NCBI GenBank assembly: GCA_907165135.1
Contig: OU015567.1
Span: 8,184,001 to 8,248,000, forward strand
Direction of reading: 5' to 3'
Source of the DNA: Oikopleura dioica
Taxonomy: Eukaryota > Animalia > Chordata
DNA: 64,000 nt
Positions within the stretch are counted from its first letter, which is position 1; each line of letters opens with the position of its first letter. Below are positions 3,151-45,721 of this stretch, piece after piece. The notes under the pieces are model-generated. The model made no database searches, was not told the origin of the DNA, and worked only from the letters and a program-made list of their open reading frames with translations. A program made the translations under genes and the position numbers.

Positions 3151-6100
3151 TTAGTATTCTTCGTGCCAAGAGACGATGTTGCGTTTGATCTTGGTCTGAT
3201 AGTCCTGGAAGTTGACGTCCTCCTTGCACTCTTTGTGGACGTTGTACTTCCAGTAACTCATCACACTTTTGATGCTTTGCTTCTTCTTTTGGGCACGCAT
3301 CTCCCGCACGCGGCGGCAGAGGAGGCAGATTGTTCGATTGACGGTGCCAAGGTTCTGCAGGCAGCCGTCAGCTGTCTTGGGCCCTTCAGTGTACAGATTT
3401 CGCCAGGCGTGGTACTCCATGTAAGCTGTGTTGTTCTTATCGAGATATTCCAAGTATTCCACGAGTTCTTTTGGTGAGTCAAAGTCCTTAAAATAAGAAA
3501 TTATAGATTTGCTGTAATTTCATTGGATAAGCCTATTTTCAGATAGTTGGCGTTCTTGTGAGGGTTTCTCGGCTTTCTGATTGGCGAAAAATGAAAGGTG
3601 GCGCTATTTGTAAGAAACTGAGAAAAATGCTGCAAATTTATTGGGTACAACTGTTTTGATGGCGCTGTTATTAGTTATGTTCGGTTCTGATTGGTTAGAA
3701 AGAGAAATTTACGCTGTTTGGTGAAAAACATCGATTTGCAAGGAAAAAGGTTGAATATTGAATAAGGGCTCTTAATATAGCATTCTCTGAGGATTCTCAA
3801 TCGTGGCTCGTTGGTCTAGGGGTATGATACTCGCTTAGGGTGCGAGTGGTCCCGGGTTCAAATCCCGGACGAGCCCTGTTGCTTTTTGATTTTGAGAATT
3901 CGTATTCATTTTTGCTGGGAAACTTCCTCTTCAACAGCATTTGAGCTTTGAACTCCATGTCACGAGAGGATGGGGCTCTCCTGATTTCGAATTCAGGCAT
4001 GCGGAGGTGAATAACAAAGCTTCATTCTAGGGGATCGCGCCACGAATGTTGGCTGGGAAGTTGGCCGATAAGCGGCTGACTCCCTCTCTATGCATAATTT
4101 CTAAAAAGAACTCGACCCCTTCTAACCTAATAGAGAGACTACAAAATTACTGTTTCAAAAAAAACAGCCGTAGTGAATAATCCGGAAAGAATAAAGTTTC
4201 GAAATTACGGTTATTCAATGCAACAAATCACCAAAGAATAGGATGGCCAAGAAACGAGTGTACCTCTGCTAGAATGTAGGAGTTCGGAGGAGCAACAGCT
4301 TTGACATCATCTGGATGAGGGCCGTAGACGACTGGAACCAATTCGTTGTTGAATGAATTGCGCCAGAACTTTTCGCTGAATAAATATCGTTACATGCCGC
4401 AAATTTGAAAGACTAACAAAAGTCTTTGGAAGATAAAACTTCCACAGAACACACGTCGTTTCGAATCTAACTGAGACGGATTACCGCACGAAAAGAACAC
4501 AATTTTCTCGTGAAAATACGCGCCTTAGAATGATATTCAGAAGTTGCGTTCATTTTTTTAAGTTGAAAGACAAGTTCATAGTTCAACGTTCAAATCAACC
4601 ACAAGAAAAAAGAGAAATAGAGTCTAAGAGAATTGGTTAAAGCTCCATTCTAGTAAAGTGAATGGTAATCCAATTGAATACTAACCTAATGTAGTCGTTG
4701 CAATGGAAGGCGTTTTCAAAAGCCAAGTAAAATTTCAGTTTCTTGAGCGGGAAAAGCTCTGACCCTCCCTTTCCAAAAGCCTTAGGAGTAGCATGCCCAA
4801 AGCATTCTCCTTCTGAGTAGAGTTTCAAACCGTCGGCAATTAATTGGGCGCCGTATTCGAATCGCTTTTGGTGGTTTTATTTACTGTTAATCTACGCACG
4901 CTTTTCTTGGCTCCAGGTTGAACAAGGACGACATGTTCGATAACATGCCTTTTGAGCGAATTAACCTAGGATAAGCGCACATGTTTAGGGTGGTTCTAAA
5001 ATGTCCCTCCGGCTTTTTTTTTATTTTGCGCAGCAACGTTAGCTGTACTTTTTCTTCCGCTATCTGGTAGGAACATGCGCTGATACGCTCCTCCGCCACA
5101 TAGTGATAAGCCTCCATAAAGTACCATACACCAGGGTTCGAAATCACCTTAAAATCACCTAAAAGTGATATTTTTGAAATTCGAAATAACTACCTCACCG
5201 TAATAATTTTTTAAGAAATTAAAAGAATAACAATTTATAAGACTTTTGAAGTGATTATTGAAGGATTTGTCACATTAGAACGGAGGAGAGAACACGATTT
5301 ATACCGGAAAAATCATCACTTTTAGGTGATTTTAAGGTGATTTCGAACCCTGCCATACACACTATGGTATCTTCACCAGAATTTTCCGCGGTGACTAAAA
5401 TGATTGTTTTCTAAAAAACAACTTCTATTATTAAGTTCATATGAGAGCTTTCGAAAGTTGCAAATAAGCTTGCCTTAGTTCCACGAAGGCTCTCGTAATT
5501 TAGCTCGAGCTTTAGAAGGCCTAGTATTCTAGCCCTCACGAGCGCGTATCAATTTACTGCCGATTTATGACTCCTAAATCCGATAAGCGCGAAATTGCGT
5601 GGATAAAATCACTCCTAACGAACCCTGAACACTTCAAATATCGATTAAATAACGTCGTCGTCATCCGAGAGCCCGTTACTATAACTGCAAATAAACCATT
5701 CCTTTACGGCTCCAGGAGTCTTTCCGCAGTTGGAGACGAACCAAGCCGTGTTGAATTCGTTACCAGCTGGGTACTTGTTTGCCATCAATTGACGAGCATA
5801 ATCCTCGTCAGACATCACCAACTCACCCTTTTCATCAAATCTAGCGCTAGTGATGACGGACTCGATGTCGCCAAATCGACGGGAAATGTCGGAATCGAGA
5901 CGGTAGGTCATTGTCACATTGAAGGCGGAATCAACTTCTCGAGGAATTGTTGATGGTTGTTCTGATCCCTGAAAAATAATGATGAAGACCGATTTTTGAG
6001 ACGAAGAAATCGACATTCGAAAATTCAGATTTGTCTATTTCGAGAGATTATCTTACCTTGATAGCAGATTCCTTGTTCTCAAAGGCCCAGATCTGCGAAA

Positions 6101-9100
6101 GATTTCTATTTTCCAAATCCGGGAAGCCGGCATCGCTGTCGCCACCGTCCCCCGCACGTTGCGAAAGACGGTTAACGCCGTGTTTAAGAACACTTTGGAG
6201 CGGTCCATTCGGAATCACGATTGCGTCAGCTGTCTGTTCTTTGCTCCGATCCGTAGTTAAGATGCACGTTCCACATTGCTCCTAGAAAGAAAGATTTAAT
6301 GAACAAGCGGGACTTTTTCGAATTGAGCGGAAGCTTCGTTAACTTGGGTTACGCTTCGTTCAAAGAAAGAATAAGACAAAACTGTGAACCCTCAGAAACC
6401 GCCAAAAAGAACGCGATTCTTCACGGCTAATGGTCTTTTTGCTCATGTAATACTAGCTCCAAAATGGATTTTTCGCCCATTCTAAATGATCCAGAATTCG
6501 AGTGAAGGCGTAATAGAATTACGTTAACTCATAATCGGATTACTACAGTAACTGTTCGTGAACGTGGTTTTTAAAGAAGAAGCGTTATGAAACCTAAGTT
6601 ATGAAAAAAACATAGCTTATGTTTCCGAAGATTGAGTTAAAAATTTGGGTTGCTGGATGTTTTGGGTCGAAATATTTTATGTCTTTCAAAACACTAGAAT
6701 ATTTACAAAAATAATTTTCACGTAAGAAACTGCCAAAGGATCAGTTTTAGAGACCTTGACTGTCTCCAAGTCATTTTGTCAAAATAAAGGTTTTTTCTTT
6801 TCGAACAGTTAGAAAATCCTGACTCAGGCTTTTAACATGGGTTCTGGAGCCCAGACGATGACTACCCCCTTAAAAGCTAGGCGAGAGCGAAGCTCATCAG
6901 CGTAATTACTGACTGCATTTGTCATCGTTTAAAAATCCCGTACGTCAAGGTCATTCATTCTCGTAATTACGCTCTCCAAAAAATGCTCAACTTGCTCTTC
7001 TTCCAATTTTTCTGGATAGATGGATTTCTTGGTGAGCGTTTTTGGTCACCGCTGCGGCCTGAGAAATAAGCTAAAATTCAGCGCGGCGCTGGAATGCCTG
7101 AAAATCGTGAAGAATTTTTTTAATGGCCTGGCGTGGTTTTCTCGGGTGAACGAACTACTCCAGAAATTGCCACAAAAATCACAAAGCTGCCCGTTTTCGC
7201 CGTAATCATTATTCACGAGCTCAATTACGAGGAACGAGGAAAATGGAACAAATTTCTATTAGACGAAAAAATTCTTTAAACTTGAGAGTTTTGTCTTTGT
7301 TATCAAGTTTTGAAAATAAAGGCGAGTTTATATCGAAAAACCACTTATTATCTTTATCTCAAGAGCGATTTTTAACCATAGTTAAGAGTCCTAAGGCTAA
7401 AATTTACGATATGAAGCAATGAACCCATTTTTAGTCAAAGCTTTGACCCAAAATTGAATAAAAAACGGTCAGTTCTGAGCGAAAAACAGCCAAAAACTTT
7501 CAATTTCTTCCTGAAAATCGACCAAAAACGGCTAAATTTCAGGCCAAAAATAGGTCAAGACGATTGAATTTCAGAAAAGAAGTCATGAGTCTCAAGATCT
7601 CTGGAAACTTTCAAGACAACAGTCAAAAAAAAGTCCCCAGACCGAACATGTCAGGTAATAAGGACCCCTTTTTTAAAAGAATATAACTTACGTGATTTTC
7701 CCACTTAGAGTCTTGTCGCACGTTATGTCCAGTATGCGCAAACCACCATAGAATTTCAACAGGCTCGGCATCGGCGTGAGACTCCATTTGCGCCGTAGTC
7801 CAGATTTTCTTCTTCCAATCTTCTTCATCCTTTTTTGTGAGGGGCTTTGATGAAGGTTTCTTATTTGAGAAAACAAATGAAGAGAGATTTTTCCAATAAG
7901 CCCTTAAAAGTGCGTGAAATAATCGATTCGCACCTTGTTAGCTTAAAAATTTAACGGTTTAAATTTTGGAATTACGTTGCGAGCGAAACGTGCCTCGTTT
8001 TTCTGGCAAGGGATGATCCTGCCGATCGGTGACTAGATAATTGGAGGTGTCGAGAATTGACGGTGAAAATTTGATAAGTTTCTAATAGCGGCTTAGAATG
8101 ACACTTCTTTTTAGATTTTTTCAGAAAAAAGATACCGATGATTTCAGACTCAAATTATCGGTTGCGCCGCCACTAAGGACTTCGTGGCTTCTCATTTGCC
8201 TCATCTCATCACCGCTTGGATTTTTAGAGTAAAAAATGCTTACTAAGTCCTTTTCGGTTTTTATGAAAAAGCTTCTCGAGCTATTTTTCGAAAACGAAAT
8301 TTCCAATTTCTAGCGCTTGTCTGACCTTATCAAATTTGCATCATGAACGACCCCAAGTCCCTCAATTTTATTTTCCCCGTTCTAATGGAACATCATTTGC
8401 TCTAAAAGTTCAACCTTTTCCTGAATTAATTGCTGGTGTTTGGCTGCCATTTTTTGGCTGATTTCGTCGTCGACAGTTTTTGAATCTTCGAAATGGAGCT
8501 TTCCATAGGACTTTGAACTGGTGATACAATTAGTTTAAAAAAAGATAAGGCAAGAGCTTAATTTGACGGGGAGGAGAAAAATGACGTTTTAGATGTGACA
8601 GATATTTTTGATAAAGATGACCTCGGAAAGGCGATAACCGCGCTTAGTTGTAAAGGTTCTTCTGGAGGGCGATTAGGATCTTTGGACAATGGAAGCGAAA
8701 TTTTTACAGTAAGAACTCATGCCGAATAATGGCGATGATAAAGAACGCTTCTTAACGTCATGACGAAAAAACGATATACAAGACCATTTTTGGTACAAGA
8801 CCATATCATATTTATCTAAAATTTCCTTCAGAAAAATTCACCATTCCTTGTGTTTCTTATGTTTCTTGTCATTTTCTTCATGAATCTTTGCCGTCATGAT
8901 CGGCATTTGTGTCGTGGTCACTTCTTTGTCGAGAGATCGTTTCTGGTGCTTTCTGAAGCCTTCTTGTACCGCTGTCAGGCTTTCTTGCCAGGTGATAAAA
9001 GAGACCATGGCAAGGAGCGCAGCGATGAATAACGAAACGCATGCGCTTCGAAAGGACACGCTGGGCCTAGGAATATTTTAATCCAGGAAGCGGCGCTGGT

Positions 9101-38994: not shown

Positions 38995-39745
38995 ATGAAG
39001 CTCGGTCTTTTAGGTACATTCTAGTCTTTACTGCTACTGTAGTTATGTTGAATGTCTTCAGGTTTAATTGGTGGAAGCATCGCAGCTCCAGCGGCTTCGC
39101 GACAGATTTCCATCCAAGTCCAGACTCGGGACAACGGACCAGGCTCTATCAATGTGAATAGCAACGGAGAAGAGTACTCAAGAGAATGGGAACAGCTCAC
39201 TCCCGACGTCAGCGAAGAAATCAACGAACAACTCGATGCGATGGGCCTCGGAGGAGGGTTCTCTGACGGTCAATTTCAGGTCCCGGTCGAATAAAATAGT
39301 CATATGTTTTATCGAGCGTCCTTTTCGATCACCGAAATAGTTCGAAGCTCCAAACTTCCCGGCTCTTATCGCCGATGTAGCAAGCAACAATGGAAATGCC
39401 GTATCGTCCTCGAAAACACTAGAGGTATAATTAGTTACCCAGCGGTCTTTCCAAATGAATTATTCATTCAAATTCAATTATTCAATAAAAAAACAGATAA
39501 TTAACATCATTTTCAGTTCTCAGTGAATAATGCTGAGGATTTTGCAGCTGAGTTTGAGCAACAGGTGATTAAATACTTTCCAGAAGTATATTTCAAACAT
39601 ATGTCTATCTTTTCACTGACTGAGATAATTGTAAACCTAATTTCAGGAGCAGAAAATCCTTGATTGGGTCCGACAGTATTCTGAAGATTTCTACAATACT
39701 GTGAAGGCTCAGCTTGACCAAATCGGATCTAGCCTCGACTCTTAG
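38995..39745 (+). CDS. Small acidic secreted protein of unknown function (5 exons)
   Basis: MKLGLLG-LIGGSIAAP signal peptide formed across a GT-AG intron; further GT-AG joins give DGQFQ-FEAPNFP, LE-FSVNNAEDF, EQQ-EQKILDWVRQY..SLDS-stop. Confidence 0.65.
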
Positions 39746-39831: not shown

Positions 39832-41680
39832 TCAATCGTATAGTTCTCCAAGTAAAACGGGTCCAGAAGCACTGAGAAAAATTAAGAACTAACAAGGCGA
39901 AAACAAAGCATACCCAGTAGTAGTAACAGACAGAATTCGGTGCCAACGTCTGTATCCAAGAATAGCAAACCCTAGTGCTTCTCTGAAATCACTAGAAACA
40001 GCAGCAGAAACTTTCAAATGAGGCAGTCGTTTTTCAAGTGTGTTCATGATCGTCGTATTCCGAGCTCCACCACCAAAAACTTTCAAAAAGCGAGCACTCC
40101 GCCCAATTTTTTCAACTTCTTTTATGATCGTCTCCGTTGTTAGGGCCGTAACTTAATTGCTGGTTAAAGTTAGGCATTATCTTGTGATTTAAATATATTT
40201 CTCGAAGATGAATTCACCTAGAACTGTCAGGCTGGAAGGATTAAAGAACAATAGTGAAGCAATTAACTACTTATAGACTCTAGTGCTCTTTTACAATTTA
40301 AACTTACTTGTTGCTATTTTCTCCGATTTATTGGCCTTTACGTCGTCCAATAATTGCTTTATCATCATTTTGTTGAAATACTCTCTGCCAGTCGATTTAG
40401 GATGAGGAAGTCGAAAGTATGGATCTATTTATGAATGCAATTAATACTTAGACTTCAAAACTATTTATATACCCTCGAGAAGGCGACTTAGATGAGAATC
40501 ATTAATTGTCCCTTCTTTTGCAAGTCTTCCATCCTCGTCAAAGTCCAACCCAAAAAAGTTCCTTCGCAGCAATATCTATCAAACAGTTTCCAGGGCCGAT
40601 GTCATAACCGATTGACCCAGACTCGTCGGAGAAAGATAAATTTGCTGAAGAGAAAGATTAAGAGCATATTTTATCAAATACCAGCTCAAAAATAAGATAA
40701 TCCGAAAATAAGCATCGCTCAAAAAATTGCTCAGTCGTACCTAGTCCTCCGATATTTAGCATAATTGTCCCCGGTTCTGAATATTCGATCGAGCTTTCCA
40801 CGGCTGGCATAAGAGGTGCCCCGTGTCCTCCTTTCAAAAATTTACATTTCATAATTTTTTTGCAATGTCACAGCATGAAATTTGCCTGGTGAACTTTCCT
40901 GCTAGTCTTTCTTTGGATAAAAAAGGTACTAAAGTAAATTCTGTCAAAATATGATATTTTCTAAATATCATTAAAAATAATTGATGCGGCATAAGATTTT
41001 TTATCCAAAAAATATCAGCTTGACGAAACTCACAGGCAACAGGAATTCCTAGTTCTGAGGCTAGTCTTCTTCCCCTTCCAATTTGCCAGGTTCGAGCCGG
41101 TTTCTTTGAAGTTCTCGGGCGATGGTAAATCGTTTGCCTTCAAGTTGGAAGAAATTAATTTTTGGGAGCCCTTTGATGAAGAAAGACTATCTTACTGACA
41201 ATCAAAAATTTTAACTAATGGCTCTATGATCAGAGTCTGATCATCAGACTGGCGATGAGACTCACCCATGAATAGCCACTAATTGAATCTCATACTGTGG
41301 CAAATACTCCCCGGCGATTTCAATCAGTAGATTTTCATATGCTTCTTCAGTGTTTGAAATAAACTCGCAAGACTTTCTTTCTCCAGCAATTAAGCTTTTG
41401 ATATCATCTTGAAGCACCTGAGGAAATTGATGAACCTTGGTCGTTTTAATTTCAAAATTGCTTAATTGAGTTAACAAGATAAAACGTCACAAATGGTTTG
41501 GAAAATCTTAGTAAACGTAAGTCCTGTCTGCGTTTTTGAAATCAACAATGACAACGTCTTTTCGAAGTTTTTTTTGTAAGATAAAGAATTGATTTCTGTT
41601 AAAGGAAATATTTTCGACTAGTTTAAAAACTTGACGACTCCGTCGACACTCGTCCCGGTCATAATGCCCATGACGATCAT
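39832..41680 (-). CDS. anmK: Anhydro-N-acetylmuramic acid kinase (AnmK / levoglucosan kinase) family protein, about 8 introns; two junctions need 1-2 nt indels
   Basis: All family blocks in order: MGIMTGTSVDG, AIHGQTIYHRP..TWQIG, EFRQAD..GGHGAPL, MLNIGGLANL, YDIGPGNCLID, DPYFRLPHPKSTGREYF, ATITALT, FGGGARN, DFREALGFAILG, TTGASGPVLLG. Confidence 0.9.
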
Positions 41681-41798: not shown

Positions 41799-43896
41799 TC
41801 ACCACTTCCAATGGTCGTTATTTTGATGTGTGTATTTCTCGGTGAGTTCTTGGTTAAACGGCGCGTAGAACTTCCTCACGAGCTCCTTTGTCTTGTCATC
41901 TACTGTATGATTTTTTGAGCTAGAAGTAGGAGAACGTGTAATGATTTTTCTAAGCTCGACAGGGACACTTACCGGCCCTTATCGCCTGCCAAACAGAAGT
42001 CGCCCCGCTCGGACACCTCTCTCGGTGGACGCATGCAATAGAATCCCTTTTCTTCGTCAAAGTAAAAGTTCTCCTCGGTAATCAGTTCCTCCACGCCAGT
42101 GAATTTGGCCACTTTGCGCATCACTTTGCCTGGATTCTCGGTCAATTCCGACGCGTCTAAAAACAACATGTTCTCAAGTTTTAAATACCTGGCGTATTGC
42201 GCGATATGAAGAGGATACAGGCCTCCAGTAAGTAAAACATCGGGAATTCTTAGAGGATAAACTCGTTCTGAAAGAGGAGCATCCCAGCGAGAATAGTAAT
42301 CTTTCACGTGATGGCGGATTTCTTCTGAGCTTAATTCATCAGGCTTTGTTTTGGATTCGAATTAGAGGTTATCAAGGATATATCTATTTTATGTTATCTT
42401 GATATAACGATTCAAAAAAATATGTAACATTATTAAATTCGAATATTATTCAAGCTTAACTATAATTAAACAAATTAGAATCCCAAGCAATGAGCCCTTT
42501 AAAATCTTCCTCATTGCAATCTCGATGACTTCCGTAAAGTTCCCATGTCCCTGTAAGTAGTACCAGCCAGGCATTGACAGTTCTCCCTTCTCCTTCGTTT
42601 TCTAAATGAAACTTTTGATTGAGCGCTTAGTTGAAAATGTGAGAAAATCCCCCAATCTCGAGGGGGAAATTGGCGGCTGCACTCGAGACTGGAGTGAGTG
42701 ATTCTTCCAGCGAAGGCCTCTCTTTACCTGGACCACTCCAGCATGGAGAAAGTGGCTATACGCGCGATGCACGGGATCGCACATGATCGAGATGATTTTA
42801 ACGCTGTCGTTCATCTGCGCCATTCTTTCTGGAACAAAAGGCCGGTCGAAGTAGTCCGGGGTCTTTTCGTACGTAACTTCGTCGGAGTAAGAGTAGGGCA
42901 TCTGATTCAAATACCAATCGAATCCCATCTTCCAGTTTGTCGGCCGGTTGAAGAAATGCTTCTCGCCAGGCGTGTCTCTCAACTTTGGATGGTAGTTCAT
43001 AAAAATCTTGAGCGCGCTTGTGCCGCACTTCTTCGCCCCGACAATGATGACTTGAGGAAAGCGCTTCTTCGGGATCTCGGTTCCATGAGCGACTTGGCGT
43101 CGTCGATTGCCCCCGATTTTGTAGAATTCTGAGAGCTTCTTTTTCATTTCTTCGGGAATAGCAAGCCCGTTCATTTCCGGACTTGTCGTTACTGTCAGCG
43201 GCGAAGAATTGTTTGCAACAGGAGATGTGGTCGTCGTCTCTTGAGTTTCAGGAACGAATTCAAGCTTGTTTTGATGAGCGATAGAAAATTCTCCATTTTC
43301 GATTCTCCTTGTTAGCAATAATGGAACACTTGTTGTTTGTATCTTCTGCAAATTAGTGTTACTCACGTATCCATACTCGTAGTATCCAACAGATCTAAAC
43401 GGATTTATTATTTGCTCGCTCGAGCAAGAATTTTCTGTGAAGTAAGATGTTTACATGTGTTCAAGTTAAATCAAATCCGCGCAGCTGAGATCTGCCGGGA
43501 AGTCCTCCGGGGAGTAGCTTACATAATACTAAGTACCCACTTGTTGGCTTGAAACAACAAAAACAAATGATTCTCGATAGAAGCTAAAAACCGAACTTTA
43601 ATAAAAAAGGTTCTCTTGTGATAAAATTTTATCTTTTGAAATAATTACTCATAATTGTAGTCGTCTTTCAGGGTTCTTCTTTGAAGTCGGTGCAATCTCG
43701 ATTCTTTGAACACAAAACAGAGTACTCCTACTGATAGAGCAACCATTATTCTGATAATTTTGGAGACTCCTGAGATAACTCGAGATGATCGCCGTATCGC
43801 TCTCCTGAAAATTTATCTGTAAAAATTTTCAGATGGCAAGAATATTTACCTTTGCTCTTTATCATGATATCGAATCGCCACTAATTGGCTCTTCAT
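41799..43896 (-). CDS. HS3ST: Heparan sulfate glucosamine 3-O-sulfotransferase-like
   Basis: Type II TM (IIRIMVALSVGVLCFVF, ~43700-43760), 5'-PSB PQVIIVGAKKCGTSAL, EKTPDYF, 3'-PB DPVHRAYSH, GLYPLHI, FYFDEEKGFYC..CLAGDKGR, KFYAPFN. Confidence 0.9.
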
Positions 43897-44217: not shown

Positions 44218-45721
44218 TTAAAGTCCGTGAGCAGCGACGGTCTGGCGAACCCAACTATCAGTTGTGAAAGCCGAAGTATAAAGCCCGGGCCATCCTTCCC
44301 AGGCACAGCCTTGTCCTCTAGAAACGACACCCATGAGTGTTGCTTTTCCGTCGACTGGGCAGACGAGGGGTCCGCCAGAATCACCCTGGCAAGCGTCAGA
44401 GCCAGGATCGGTCTTTCCATCGCCATCAATGTCAGGTTTGGATGCGCAGATATCATCTGCTTGAAGAGAAGAGAAGTAAGAATTCGCAACGCAGTATTCT
44501 GCGCTGAGAATATTCACTCCAACTGATAGCAATGTCGCACTTGAGGAACCCCCTGAGCTGGTCGTACCCCAGCCTGCGACCCAACAGCCAGCACCATGTT
44601 CCTTATCAGCTTTTGGAAGACAAGCAGGTCGAACTTGATTGTCTGGATCAGAAGCGATGATATCATTATTGAACTTGATGAGGCAAACATCGTTGTTTTG
44701 TGAGTTTCCATCGGCGACACGGGAGCCGTACTCAGGATGATTAAACCAGGCGGTGGCTTGGAGCTCATACTCGTTGCTATCCCATGCAGATCGATGCAGA
44801 TCTCCGAATCGGGCGTAAATCGTCTGTATACCTTCGCAACAATGAGCAGCGCTCATTACCCATCTGTTGGCAATCACGCTACCGCCGCAAGAATACCACC
44901 AAGCATCATTTTCTTCGTCTTGCAGACTCAAGTGGGCGATCCAAGGCCAAGCGTTGTCGCCGGCTTCTACTCCCCGACGATTTTTCTTCGCTAGACAGAC
45001 TTGTAAGTTCGGGGAAATTCTGTGCCTCAGAGCAAGTTTGAAGACCAGGAGTGATTGAATTGCTCAGTGGGGCGAATTCAGTCGGTGGCACCGTTGGAGG
45101 CTCAGTTGGTGCCTCAGTGCCTTGTCCTCTGCAAGATCTCTTCCAGAAATTCCTATTCCACGATGGCTTTTTGAAATTTCCGCGAACACAGAGAACTGCT
45201 CCTTTAATCTCTCCATCCTCGCAGACGACGTTAAACATCGCCCGTCTGGGGTTGACGATATTCTTCAATACGAGGCCTCCATCCTCAATAGTGATTGTGT
45301 CTGCTTTGACTTCACACATATGTGGTGGCCTAGGAGCGCAGGAGAGGGAAGTTCCCGCTGGTAAGTTCCTAGAAATTGAATAAATGGATCTATAAACAAT
45401 GATTTTGTCTTACTTTTTAACAATCTTCGGTGATTTTTGGCATCTTGCGACGAATTTCGGAGCAATTCTACCTGGCTTAGTTTTCCAAGTCTTTATAAAT
45501 CCGTCATTGCACCTTGGGAAGCACCAGATATTTGCAACTTGCTGTCCAAGCTTTGGACAGTTCCAGTATCCATTGTCGATAGGAAACTCGTTCTTTGTGT
45601 CTTCTACTTTTGATTCACAGGTTTCTGCTCTCTGTGCTCTTACTGCAGGAACGAAGGCTTCATATCTCTTCTCGTAATGTGCGGCGACCTGAGTGGCGAG
45701 GAAAAATTGCGACAACTTCAT
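44218..45721 (-). CDS. Secreted trypsin-like serine protease with two Cys-rich N-terminal modules; 1-nt frameshift in the IVGG activation motif
   Basis: Signal peptide MKLSQFFLATQVAA; triad motifs SAAHC, NNDVCLI, GDSGGP; S1 Asp (SDACQG). IVGGVEAG needs G5 but the sequence has G4 at 44972-44975. Confidence 0.9.

Follow-up and report, generated by a model that had tools for sequence, protein, structure and literature searches.

An AnmK-family kinase gene of putative bacterial origin, interrupted by eight introns, in the appendicularian Oikopleura dioica

The window analyzed here, a 64,000-nucleotide stretch of Oikopleura dioica contig OU015567.1 (assembly GCA_907165135.1, positions 8,184,001 to 8,248,000 of the forward strand), carries on its minus strand, at 39832–41680, a gene of the AnmK family, a group of kinases that use ATP in opening and phosphorylating 1,6-anhydro sugars. 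The interpretation that we favor, with a probability of roughly 0.7, is that this is an intact nuclear gene of the Okinawa lineage of O. dioica (assembly OKI2018_I69, chr2), that it is of bacterial origin, and that its product still serves as an anhydro-sugar kinase in the cells of the animal. An appendicularian ancestor would have taken anmK from a bacterium, and the acquired gene would then have gained introns and a host-like base composition. The protein may still phosphorylate anhMurNAc (the 1,6-anhydro form of N-acetylmuramic acid) or a close anhydro sugar inside cells, with the bacteria that the animal filters and digests as the most probable source of the substrate. According to a preprint, the transfer of anmK into eukaryotes was previously unreported; it describes the transfer in ticks, together with an independent case in rotifers (10.64898/2026.03.13.711553). 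Our literature search returned no paper linking Oikopleura with AnmK.

The coding sequence extends from an ATG at 41680–41678 to a TGA stop at 39834–39832 and is distributed over nine exons separated by eight short introns. Splicing yields a product of approximately 354 amino acids, the full length of an AnmK-family kinase, and residues 2–353 of the spliced model align end to end with bacterial AnmK at about 34–38% identity (E ~1e-69). Four separate exon open reading frames (ORFs) match the Pfam AnmK profile PF03702 at positions 2–15, 137–169, 199–226, and 292–346, in gene order, and the protein of a sister lineage, P0018, scores 243.5 bits against the same profile (cut-off 24). Searches with single exons against the PDB gave about 13 bits and were too weak to use. 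An earlier reading of this DNA from its letters alone (the sequence-only reading) had proposed an eight-intron AnmK homologue at this location. Its coordinates and intron count are correct, as is the strand, and every motif that it listed is present in the spliced model: TGTSVDG, HGQT, EFR, GGHGAPL, NIGG, DIGPGN, PKSTGRE, GGGARN, and EALGFA. Its further claim, that every AnmK block can be spliced in order, stands for order and frame but not yet for the exact junctions at introns 1 and 4, and exon 6 is frameshifted as assembled.

Exon 1 (41636–41680) provides the start codon and the ATP-loop motif MIVMGIMTGTSVDGV, so the phosphate-binding loop GTSxDG is encoded there, as MTGTSVDG, while the residues following the loop hinge on the boundaries of intron 1. 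The 3′ end of this exon was placed by homology; the public gene model ends it at 41631, and in the Tara Oceans metagenome scaffold L004, which contains an AnmK gene 46% identical to the present one, the N-terminus is uninterrupted. Intron 1, with provisional boundaries at 41559–41635, is 77 nt long in the homology model. Exon 2 (41524–41558) encodes DVVIVDFKNAD; in the sister-lineage cDNA contig L003, which begins with the homologous DVVVVDFKNAD, the join to exon 3 falls at the same point and confirms the junction KNAD/SNFEI across intron 2 (41461–41523, 63 nt). Exon 3 (41266–41460) runs from SNFEIK to VAIHG, and intron 3 (41138–41265, 128 nt) splits the HGQT motif between HG and QT, at the same place and in the same phase as in L004. 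Exon 4 (41011–41137), from QTIYHRP to GIPVACEFRQADI, contains the Thr and Arg residues to which anhMurNAc binds in Pseudomonas aeruginosa AnmK; its 3′ end and the 5′ boundary of intron 4 (40831–41010) are provisional. Exon 5 (40741–40830) continues from (G)GHGAPLMP to NIGGL. The segment DFRxxD-x-x-GGxGAPL of the family is thus encoded as EFRQADI and GGHGAPL, which flank intron 4, and no rule-abiding splice gives the two-residue spacer of the relatives.

After intron 5 (40645–40740, 96 nt), exon 6 (40473–40644) encodes ANLSF, YDIGPGNCLID with the catalytic Asp, and the terminal LLE; an assembly error lies inside it, at a point where the relatives read DIVAQEKFGRGYDEGG straight through. Intron 6 (40425–40472, 48 nt) is followed by exon 7 (40308–40424), which runs from DPYFRLPHPKSTGREYFN to KIAT, and intron 7 (40152–40307, 156 nt) by exon 8 (39914–40151), which begins with TALTTE, includes GGGARN and FREALGFAILGYRRWH with the conserved Glu, and ends with TTTG. 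Intron 8 (39872–39913, 42 nt) precedes exon 9 (39832–39871), which encodes ASGPVLLGELYD and the stop codon and is spliced alike in P0001 and P0018. The catalytic-Asp motif D-x-GPGN and the conserved-Glu motif E-A-x-x-F-A are found as YDIGPGN in exon 6 and FREALGFA in exon 8, and map to D182 and E326. Introns 3, 5, 6, 7, and 8 have GT-AG ends, and intron 2 has the non-canonical ends GA-AG. GA-AG introns are frequent in O. dioica (PMC7072748), and 11% of the introns in the Nanopore-based OKI2018_I69 assembly are non-canonical (PMC8008620).

As assembled, exon 6 shifts frame between DIAAKELF and GLDFDEDG, at the homopolymer 40552–40557, which reads A6 on the plus strand and should read A5. The extra base is missing from the contigs of read set X1 (depth 321/321), which matches the window almost exactly and is its probable source, and from those of X3 (122/122), which comes from another study. 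Since both lack it, the extra base is an assembly error, and this one-base insertion creates a false frameshift. With five bases exon 6 is open throughout, and the sister-lineage proteins also read through that point. The public model P0019 (Oidioi.mRNA.OKI2018_I69.chr2.g6252.t1.cds, 354 aa) is identical to the exons of the window over most of its length. Because it compensates for the extra homopolymer base, this model leaves the reading frame through exons 5 and 6, where about 60 nonsense residues cover GGHGAPL, NIGG, and DIGPGN. With the public model wrong over the active-site region, screens for horizontal transfer that rely on annotation miss or misread the gene.

Because AnmK proteins are typically bacterial, the region could be suspected of being contamination or an artefact of assembly, a possibility that we regard as negligible. 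The gene contains eight introns, for two of which cDNA of sister lineages confirms the same sites; its GC content is host-like; animal genes flank it on a 16-Mb chromosome scaffold; and the locus is present in several independent read sets. On these grounds contamination was rejected as refuted. The sequence-only reading had also held that the gene is not contamination, and this judgment is reinforced by the chromosomal setting amid animal genes, the independent read sets, the conserved gene order, and the purifying selection described below.

The closest relatives beyond the appendicularian-like sequences are bacterial. An exhaustive search with exon 8 (80 aa) against 1.84 billion representatives returned 17 matches, which comprise only an appendicularian-like clade and then bacteria. 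Two word searches, using a word index and a length window, found no eukaryote outside this clade closer than bacteria, and the bacterial matches lie at about 40% identity and below. The nearest outgroups, P0022 and P0009, adjoin Peptidase_M23 and other bacterial genes. In two trees the appendicularian clade is placed among bacterial AnmKs with a support of 99–100 and a long stem. In the tree of 122 rows, the clade has a value of 100 in the Shimodaira–Hasegawa-like approximate likelihood ratio test (SH-aLRT) and a stem of 1.18, and is sister to a Pseudomonadota-type clade (91). In the tree of 84 rows, which includes named genomes from the matches listed, neither Pseudomonadota (100) nor Acidobacteriota (98) includes it, and it groups with a second long branch, a pairing flagged for long-branch joining. 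Naming a donor phylum was rejected for these reasons. The sequence-only reading had proposed a phylogeny as a check; the clade is placed among the bacterial enzymes, and the fungal levoglucosan kinase (LGK) was compared by bit score, length, and motifs. That reading had also referred to AnmK-like annotations in some marine invertebrates, which have no counterpart among the search matches. The gene is resident in the genome, its nearest outgroups are bacterial, and no other animal was found to carry a relative in searches that did not address ascidian genomes directly; these are the features of a horizontally acquired animal gene.

Among solved structures, the protein scored 159 and 146 bits against AnmK and 104 and 96 bits against LGK. 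The fungal enzyme (Lipomyces starkeyi, PDB 4ZLU/4YH5) belongs to the same superfamily, with the same mechanism and the HGQT, DFR, and NIGG motifs, but at 447 aa it is about 90 residues longer, and it reads GRQGAPL where the Oikopleura protein reads GGHGAPL. Membership in the LGK subfamily was accordingly rejected (96–104 versus 146–159 bits; 447 versus about 354 aa). This comparison also bears on the idea that bacteria were not the direct source, and that the gene instead descended by vertical inheritance within an old eukaryotic lineage of AnmK and levoglucosan kinase or was obtained from a protist. We consider such a history very improbable. Although the stem is long, the trees disagree on the donor, and many database matches are without names, no eukaryote outside the appendicularian-like clade ranked above bacteria, fungal LGK is more distant than bacterial AnmK, and the nearest outgroups have bacterial neighbors. 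Intron positions furthermore vary among the members, which is expected from an intronless ancestor.

Purifying selection is evident on either side of the exon 4/5 junction. The Okinawa protein is 65% identical to those of two sister-lineage cDNAs, with a ratio of non-synonymous to synonymous substitution rates (dN/dS) of 0.12–0.14; between the two sister lineages the ratio is 0.11 at a dS of 0.81. Branch lengths are even across the three O. dioica lineages. In X3, 15 polymorphisms fall in 1059 exon bases (1.4%) versus 24 in 942 other bases (2.5%). The exonic single-nucleotide polymorphisms (SNPs) comprise 11 synonymous and 4 non-synonymous changes, the split being 7 versus 1 downstream of intron 4. 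Since selection acts on both sides of the junction, there must be an in-frame mRNA, or there must have been one up to the very recent past. For the orthologues, the contigs L001, L002, and L003 (runs ERR2676436, SRR10519050, and SRR5123517) represent cDNA that is spliced or partly spliced.

The residues expected of a functional enzyme are retained. All those named for P. aeruginosa AnmK (S12, D14, T97, R129, N168, D182, D191, F202, and E326) are present, and their roles in binding ATP, Mg, and anhMurNAc have been described (10.64898/2026.03.13.711553). No signal peptide is apparent, and the protein begins directly at the kinase core. From this, and from the conserved catalytic and substrate-binding residues, we predict a cytosolic anhydro-sugar kinase. 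A role in the salvage of dietary cell-wall sugars, which the sequence-only reading had also suggested, is plausible for a filter feeder that consumes bacteria and is treated here as putative.

Several observations weigh against the view that an intact gene of bacterial origin continues to act as an anhydro-sugar kinase. P0018, a partial protein of 279 aa, remains below the NCBIfam equivalog cut-offs (NF007138–NF007151), with the best score being 272.6 versus 387 bits for NF007148; the N-terminal exon of L004 contributes only about 42 bits to an equivalog score. LGK has the same sugar-binding residues, and the sequence leaves the substrate undecided; a substrate call from the binding residues was rejected because LGK shares them. 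The tick homologue shows weak activity on anhMurNAc, about 500-fold below that of the Escherichia coli enzyme (10.64898/2026.03.13.711553). The placement of the donor differs between the 122-row and 84-row trees. At introns 1 and 4, no GT/GA-AG solution yields the protein sequence of the relatives, and in comparison with L003 the Okinawa sequence is without 17 nt that hold the LK(G) codons and the donor of intron 4. Finally, two oligo-dT RNA runs of uncertain lineage contain zero reads at the locus, a result that counts as no test, and no run recorded as RNA contains the AnmK stretch.

At the first of the two irregular introns, L004 encodes GTSVDGIDVVVIHF without interruption at the exon 1/2 site. 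To obtain GV/DVVIVDF as in the relatives, a 77-nt intron 1 with GT..AA ends is required, or one with TC..AG ends if slid by one base. The options that abide by the rules are a GT-AG intron of 35 nt (41630–41596), which is used in the public model and adds 14 aa, and a GA-AG intron, which removes Gly-Val. The ends of intron 1 are complementary (window 41559–41650, minus strand): AAGUUUUU could pair with AAAAACUU, which would juxtapose the exon ends, at a z of −0.26 versus shuffled sequence. RNA folding of introns 1 and 4 was no better than that of shuffled sequence, with z about −0.2.

At the exon 4/5 junction, the sister lineages read FR(Q/H)ADI(E/L)KGGHGAPL and have a GA-AG intron after DI(L/E)KG; L003 retains intron 4, which there follows ...AAA G. 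The contigs of X1 and X3 match the window at the 17-nt gap. All single- and double-intron solutions that start with G and end with AG were enumerated for this junction, and none reproduces the sequence of the relatives. The in-frame options are a GT-AG intron from 41024, which removes 7 aa, and cryptic donors deep in the intron, which add 16 to 42 residues; the strongest of these, CAG/GAAAGT at 40898 (GA-AG), adds 37 aa. An AT-AG intron from 41015 would remove four residues. The donors at 41033 and 41006 (the latter a GG-AG option), which lie inside the FRQADI codons or just beyond them, produce a stop formed by T and GA. Directly upstream of exon 5, the codons TTG AAA G match the Leu-Lys-Gly of the relatives, and no known splice rule joins them to GAT ATT. 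As a separate observation, the frame of exon 4 stays open for 56 more codons through nearly all of intron 4 (40846–41016, minus strand), which is estimated to occur by chance in about 1% of cases. In one X3 haplotype, SNPs at 41008 and 41009 place a TGA directly behind GAT ATT, which speaks against a coding role for the codons of intron 4.

These junctions raise the question of whether the gene has recently become a pseudogene in the Okinawa lineage, so that, with the intron 4 donor lost, every mRNA would stop prematurely or encode a damaged active-site loop. The 17-nt gap takes out both the donor and the LK(G) codons, two of the donors lead to a stop, and the other in-frame options lose 4–7 conserved residues or add 37; the zero reads in the two RNA runs point the same way but count as no test. 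We nevertheless consider recent decay unlikely. Among the SNPs in exons downstream of the junction, 7 are synonymous and 1 is non-synonymous, no other stop or frameshift remains after correction of the assembly error, the Okinawa branch is as long as those of the sister lineages, dN/dS is as low as stated above, and the Leu-Lys-Gly codons survive just upstream of exon 5. If introns 1 and 4 are removed exactly as homology indicates, O. dioica would have introns that break both the G-start and the AG-end rules. The exon 4/5 junction has been rearranged in a manner that current splice rules fail to explain.

The most substantial alternative is that the gene is intact but that its enzyme has changed substrate or role: instead of salvaging dietary peptidoglycan, it would act on a different 1,6-anhydro sugar or on an endogenous metabolite, or take part in reproduction or the sensing of microbes, functions that have been suggested in ticks. 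We regard this as possible, with odds of about one against three. The long stem branch, the C-terminal signature specific to the clade, the alteration of GGQGAPL to GGHGAPL or QGHGAPL in most members, the scores under the equivalog cut-offs, the weakness of the tick enzyme on anhMurNAc, and the binding residues held in common with LGK are all consistent with it. On the other hand, all named anhMurNAc- and ATP-binding residues are retained, the protein is nearer to AnmK than to LGK, and no result points to an alternative substrate. The closest known counterpart is bacterial AnmK (E. coli; P. aeruginosa, PDB 3QBW/8CPB; Shewanella, 3CQY), with which the protein shares Pfam family, length, colinearity over its whole length at 34–42% identity, and the named residues. 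Unlike its bacterial counterparts, the Oikopleura gene is nuclear, has eight introns, and lies outside any murein-recycling operon context; its product also has the C-terminal signature of its clade and an H in place of the Q of GGQGAPL, and its kinase activity is putative. Oikopleura ranks among the major marine filter feeders that take particles the size of bacteria. A more far-reaching proposal, that appendicularians assembled a small toolkit of bacterial genes to feed on peptidoglycan, in which AnmK would recover the anhydro-amino-sugar ends of the glycan, is doubtful.

The tick and rotifer genes offer the closest parallel, as bacterial anmK genes domesticated in animals, with introns, host-like composition, and selection; both derive from Chitinophagaceae clade 2 (10.64898/2026.03.13.711553). 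The tick gene has a single intron in its 5′ untranslated region, whereas the Oikopleura gene has eight coding introns, and the tick enzyme has an Asn-to-Cys change at the GG-x-A-N position, where Oikopleura keeps Asn. The sequences most closely related to the Oikopleura protein include none from ticks; the best among the matches listed are Pseudomonadota and Acidobacteriota. Because these nearest relatives are different bacteria, the acquisition in Oikopleura was probably a separate event, independent of that in ticks and rotifers. Tunicates provide further precedents in the cellulose synthase CesA and in GH6, which are also horizontally acquired, bacterial-type carbohydrate enzymes fixed in a tunicate lineage (PMC7464555, PMC10334666). 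In contrast to these, AnmK is found only in appendicularian-like sequences and not in ascidians, which were not searched directly, and it is a catabolic or salvage kinase rather than an enzyme of a structural polymer.

The gene also occurs in more distant relatives from the plankton. The scaffold L006 (31% GC, with long introns) and P0005, P0008, and P0015, which are short proteins from metagenomes or metatranscriptomes, share the clade-specific C-terminal signature GYRR(W/F)H...TTG, and most members of the clade read GGHGAPL or QGHGAPL at the conserved GGQGAPL. L004 shares only intron 3, at the same site and phase; it lacks the other seven and has its own others. Since these seven are absent from L004, most of the introns are lineage-specific gains and not age markers, and intron 3 is the one old intron. 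The argument of the sequence-only reading that many introns indicate long residence was therefore right in spirit, but seven of the eight cannot date the gene. AnmK is therefore old within the marine eukaryote group taken as appendicularians, and its introns were mostly gained after its arrival. The HG/QT intron of L004 (1925–2105) seems to have CT..AG or TA..GT ends instead of GT-AG, which suggests unusual splice sites in this relative. The read-through metagenome ORFs P0002, P0004, and P0032 suggest two extra introns in exon 8 of a sister lineage, after LPSLE and after GYR; that lineage keeps intron 7 at the same site, and intron content thus varies even between cryptic lineages.

Gene order is also retained. 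A Sulfotransfer_1 gene (41799–43366, minus strand) is the same-strand upstream neighbor and ends 118 nt before the AnmK start. L004 (3–1300) keeps the sulfotransferase directly upstream of AnmK on the same strand, its N-terminal part being up to 87% identical, and the two genes could be a conserved operon-like pair. On the other side, a convergent gene (39646–39745, plus strand) stops about 86 nt from the AnmK stop, and the sister cDNA contig L001 (1072–1414) joins AnmK with this convergent neighbor; the 3′ ends probably overlap or abut. Elsewhere in the window, a 237-aa ORF at 44218–44931 (minus strand) bears the hallmarks of a trypsin-like serine protease (AAHC and GDSGGP). L004 additionally contains, at 5299–6702, a single ORF of 467 aa that belongs to the PhoPQ-activated pathogenicity-related family (PF10142, 231 bits) and has no match in the window; the family is mostly bacterial, and this gene may be another transfer candidate. 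Run X4, labelled organism B, contains 35% of the sampled words of the stretch, and the marine metagenome X7 contains 15%.

The gene would represent the third case of anmK in an animal and the first in a chordate, common to several appendicularian lineages and kept by selection. The fact that related lineages differ in most AnmK intron positions provides a view of intron turnover. An enzyme for a sugar specific to peptidoglycan that has been retained in this way leads one to ask what use animals make of the cell walls of bacteria.

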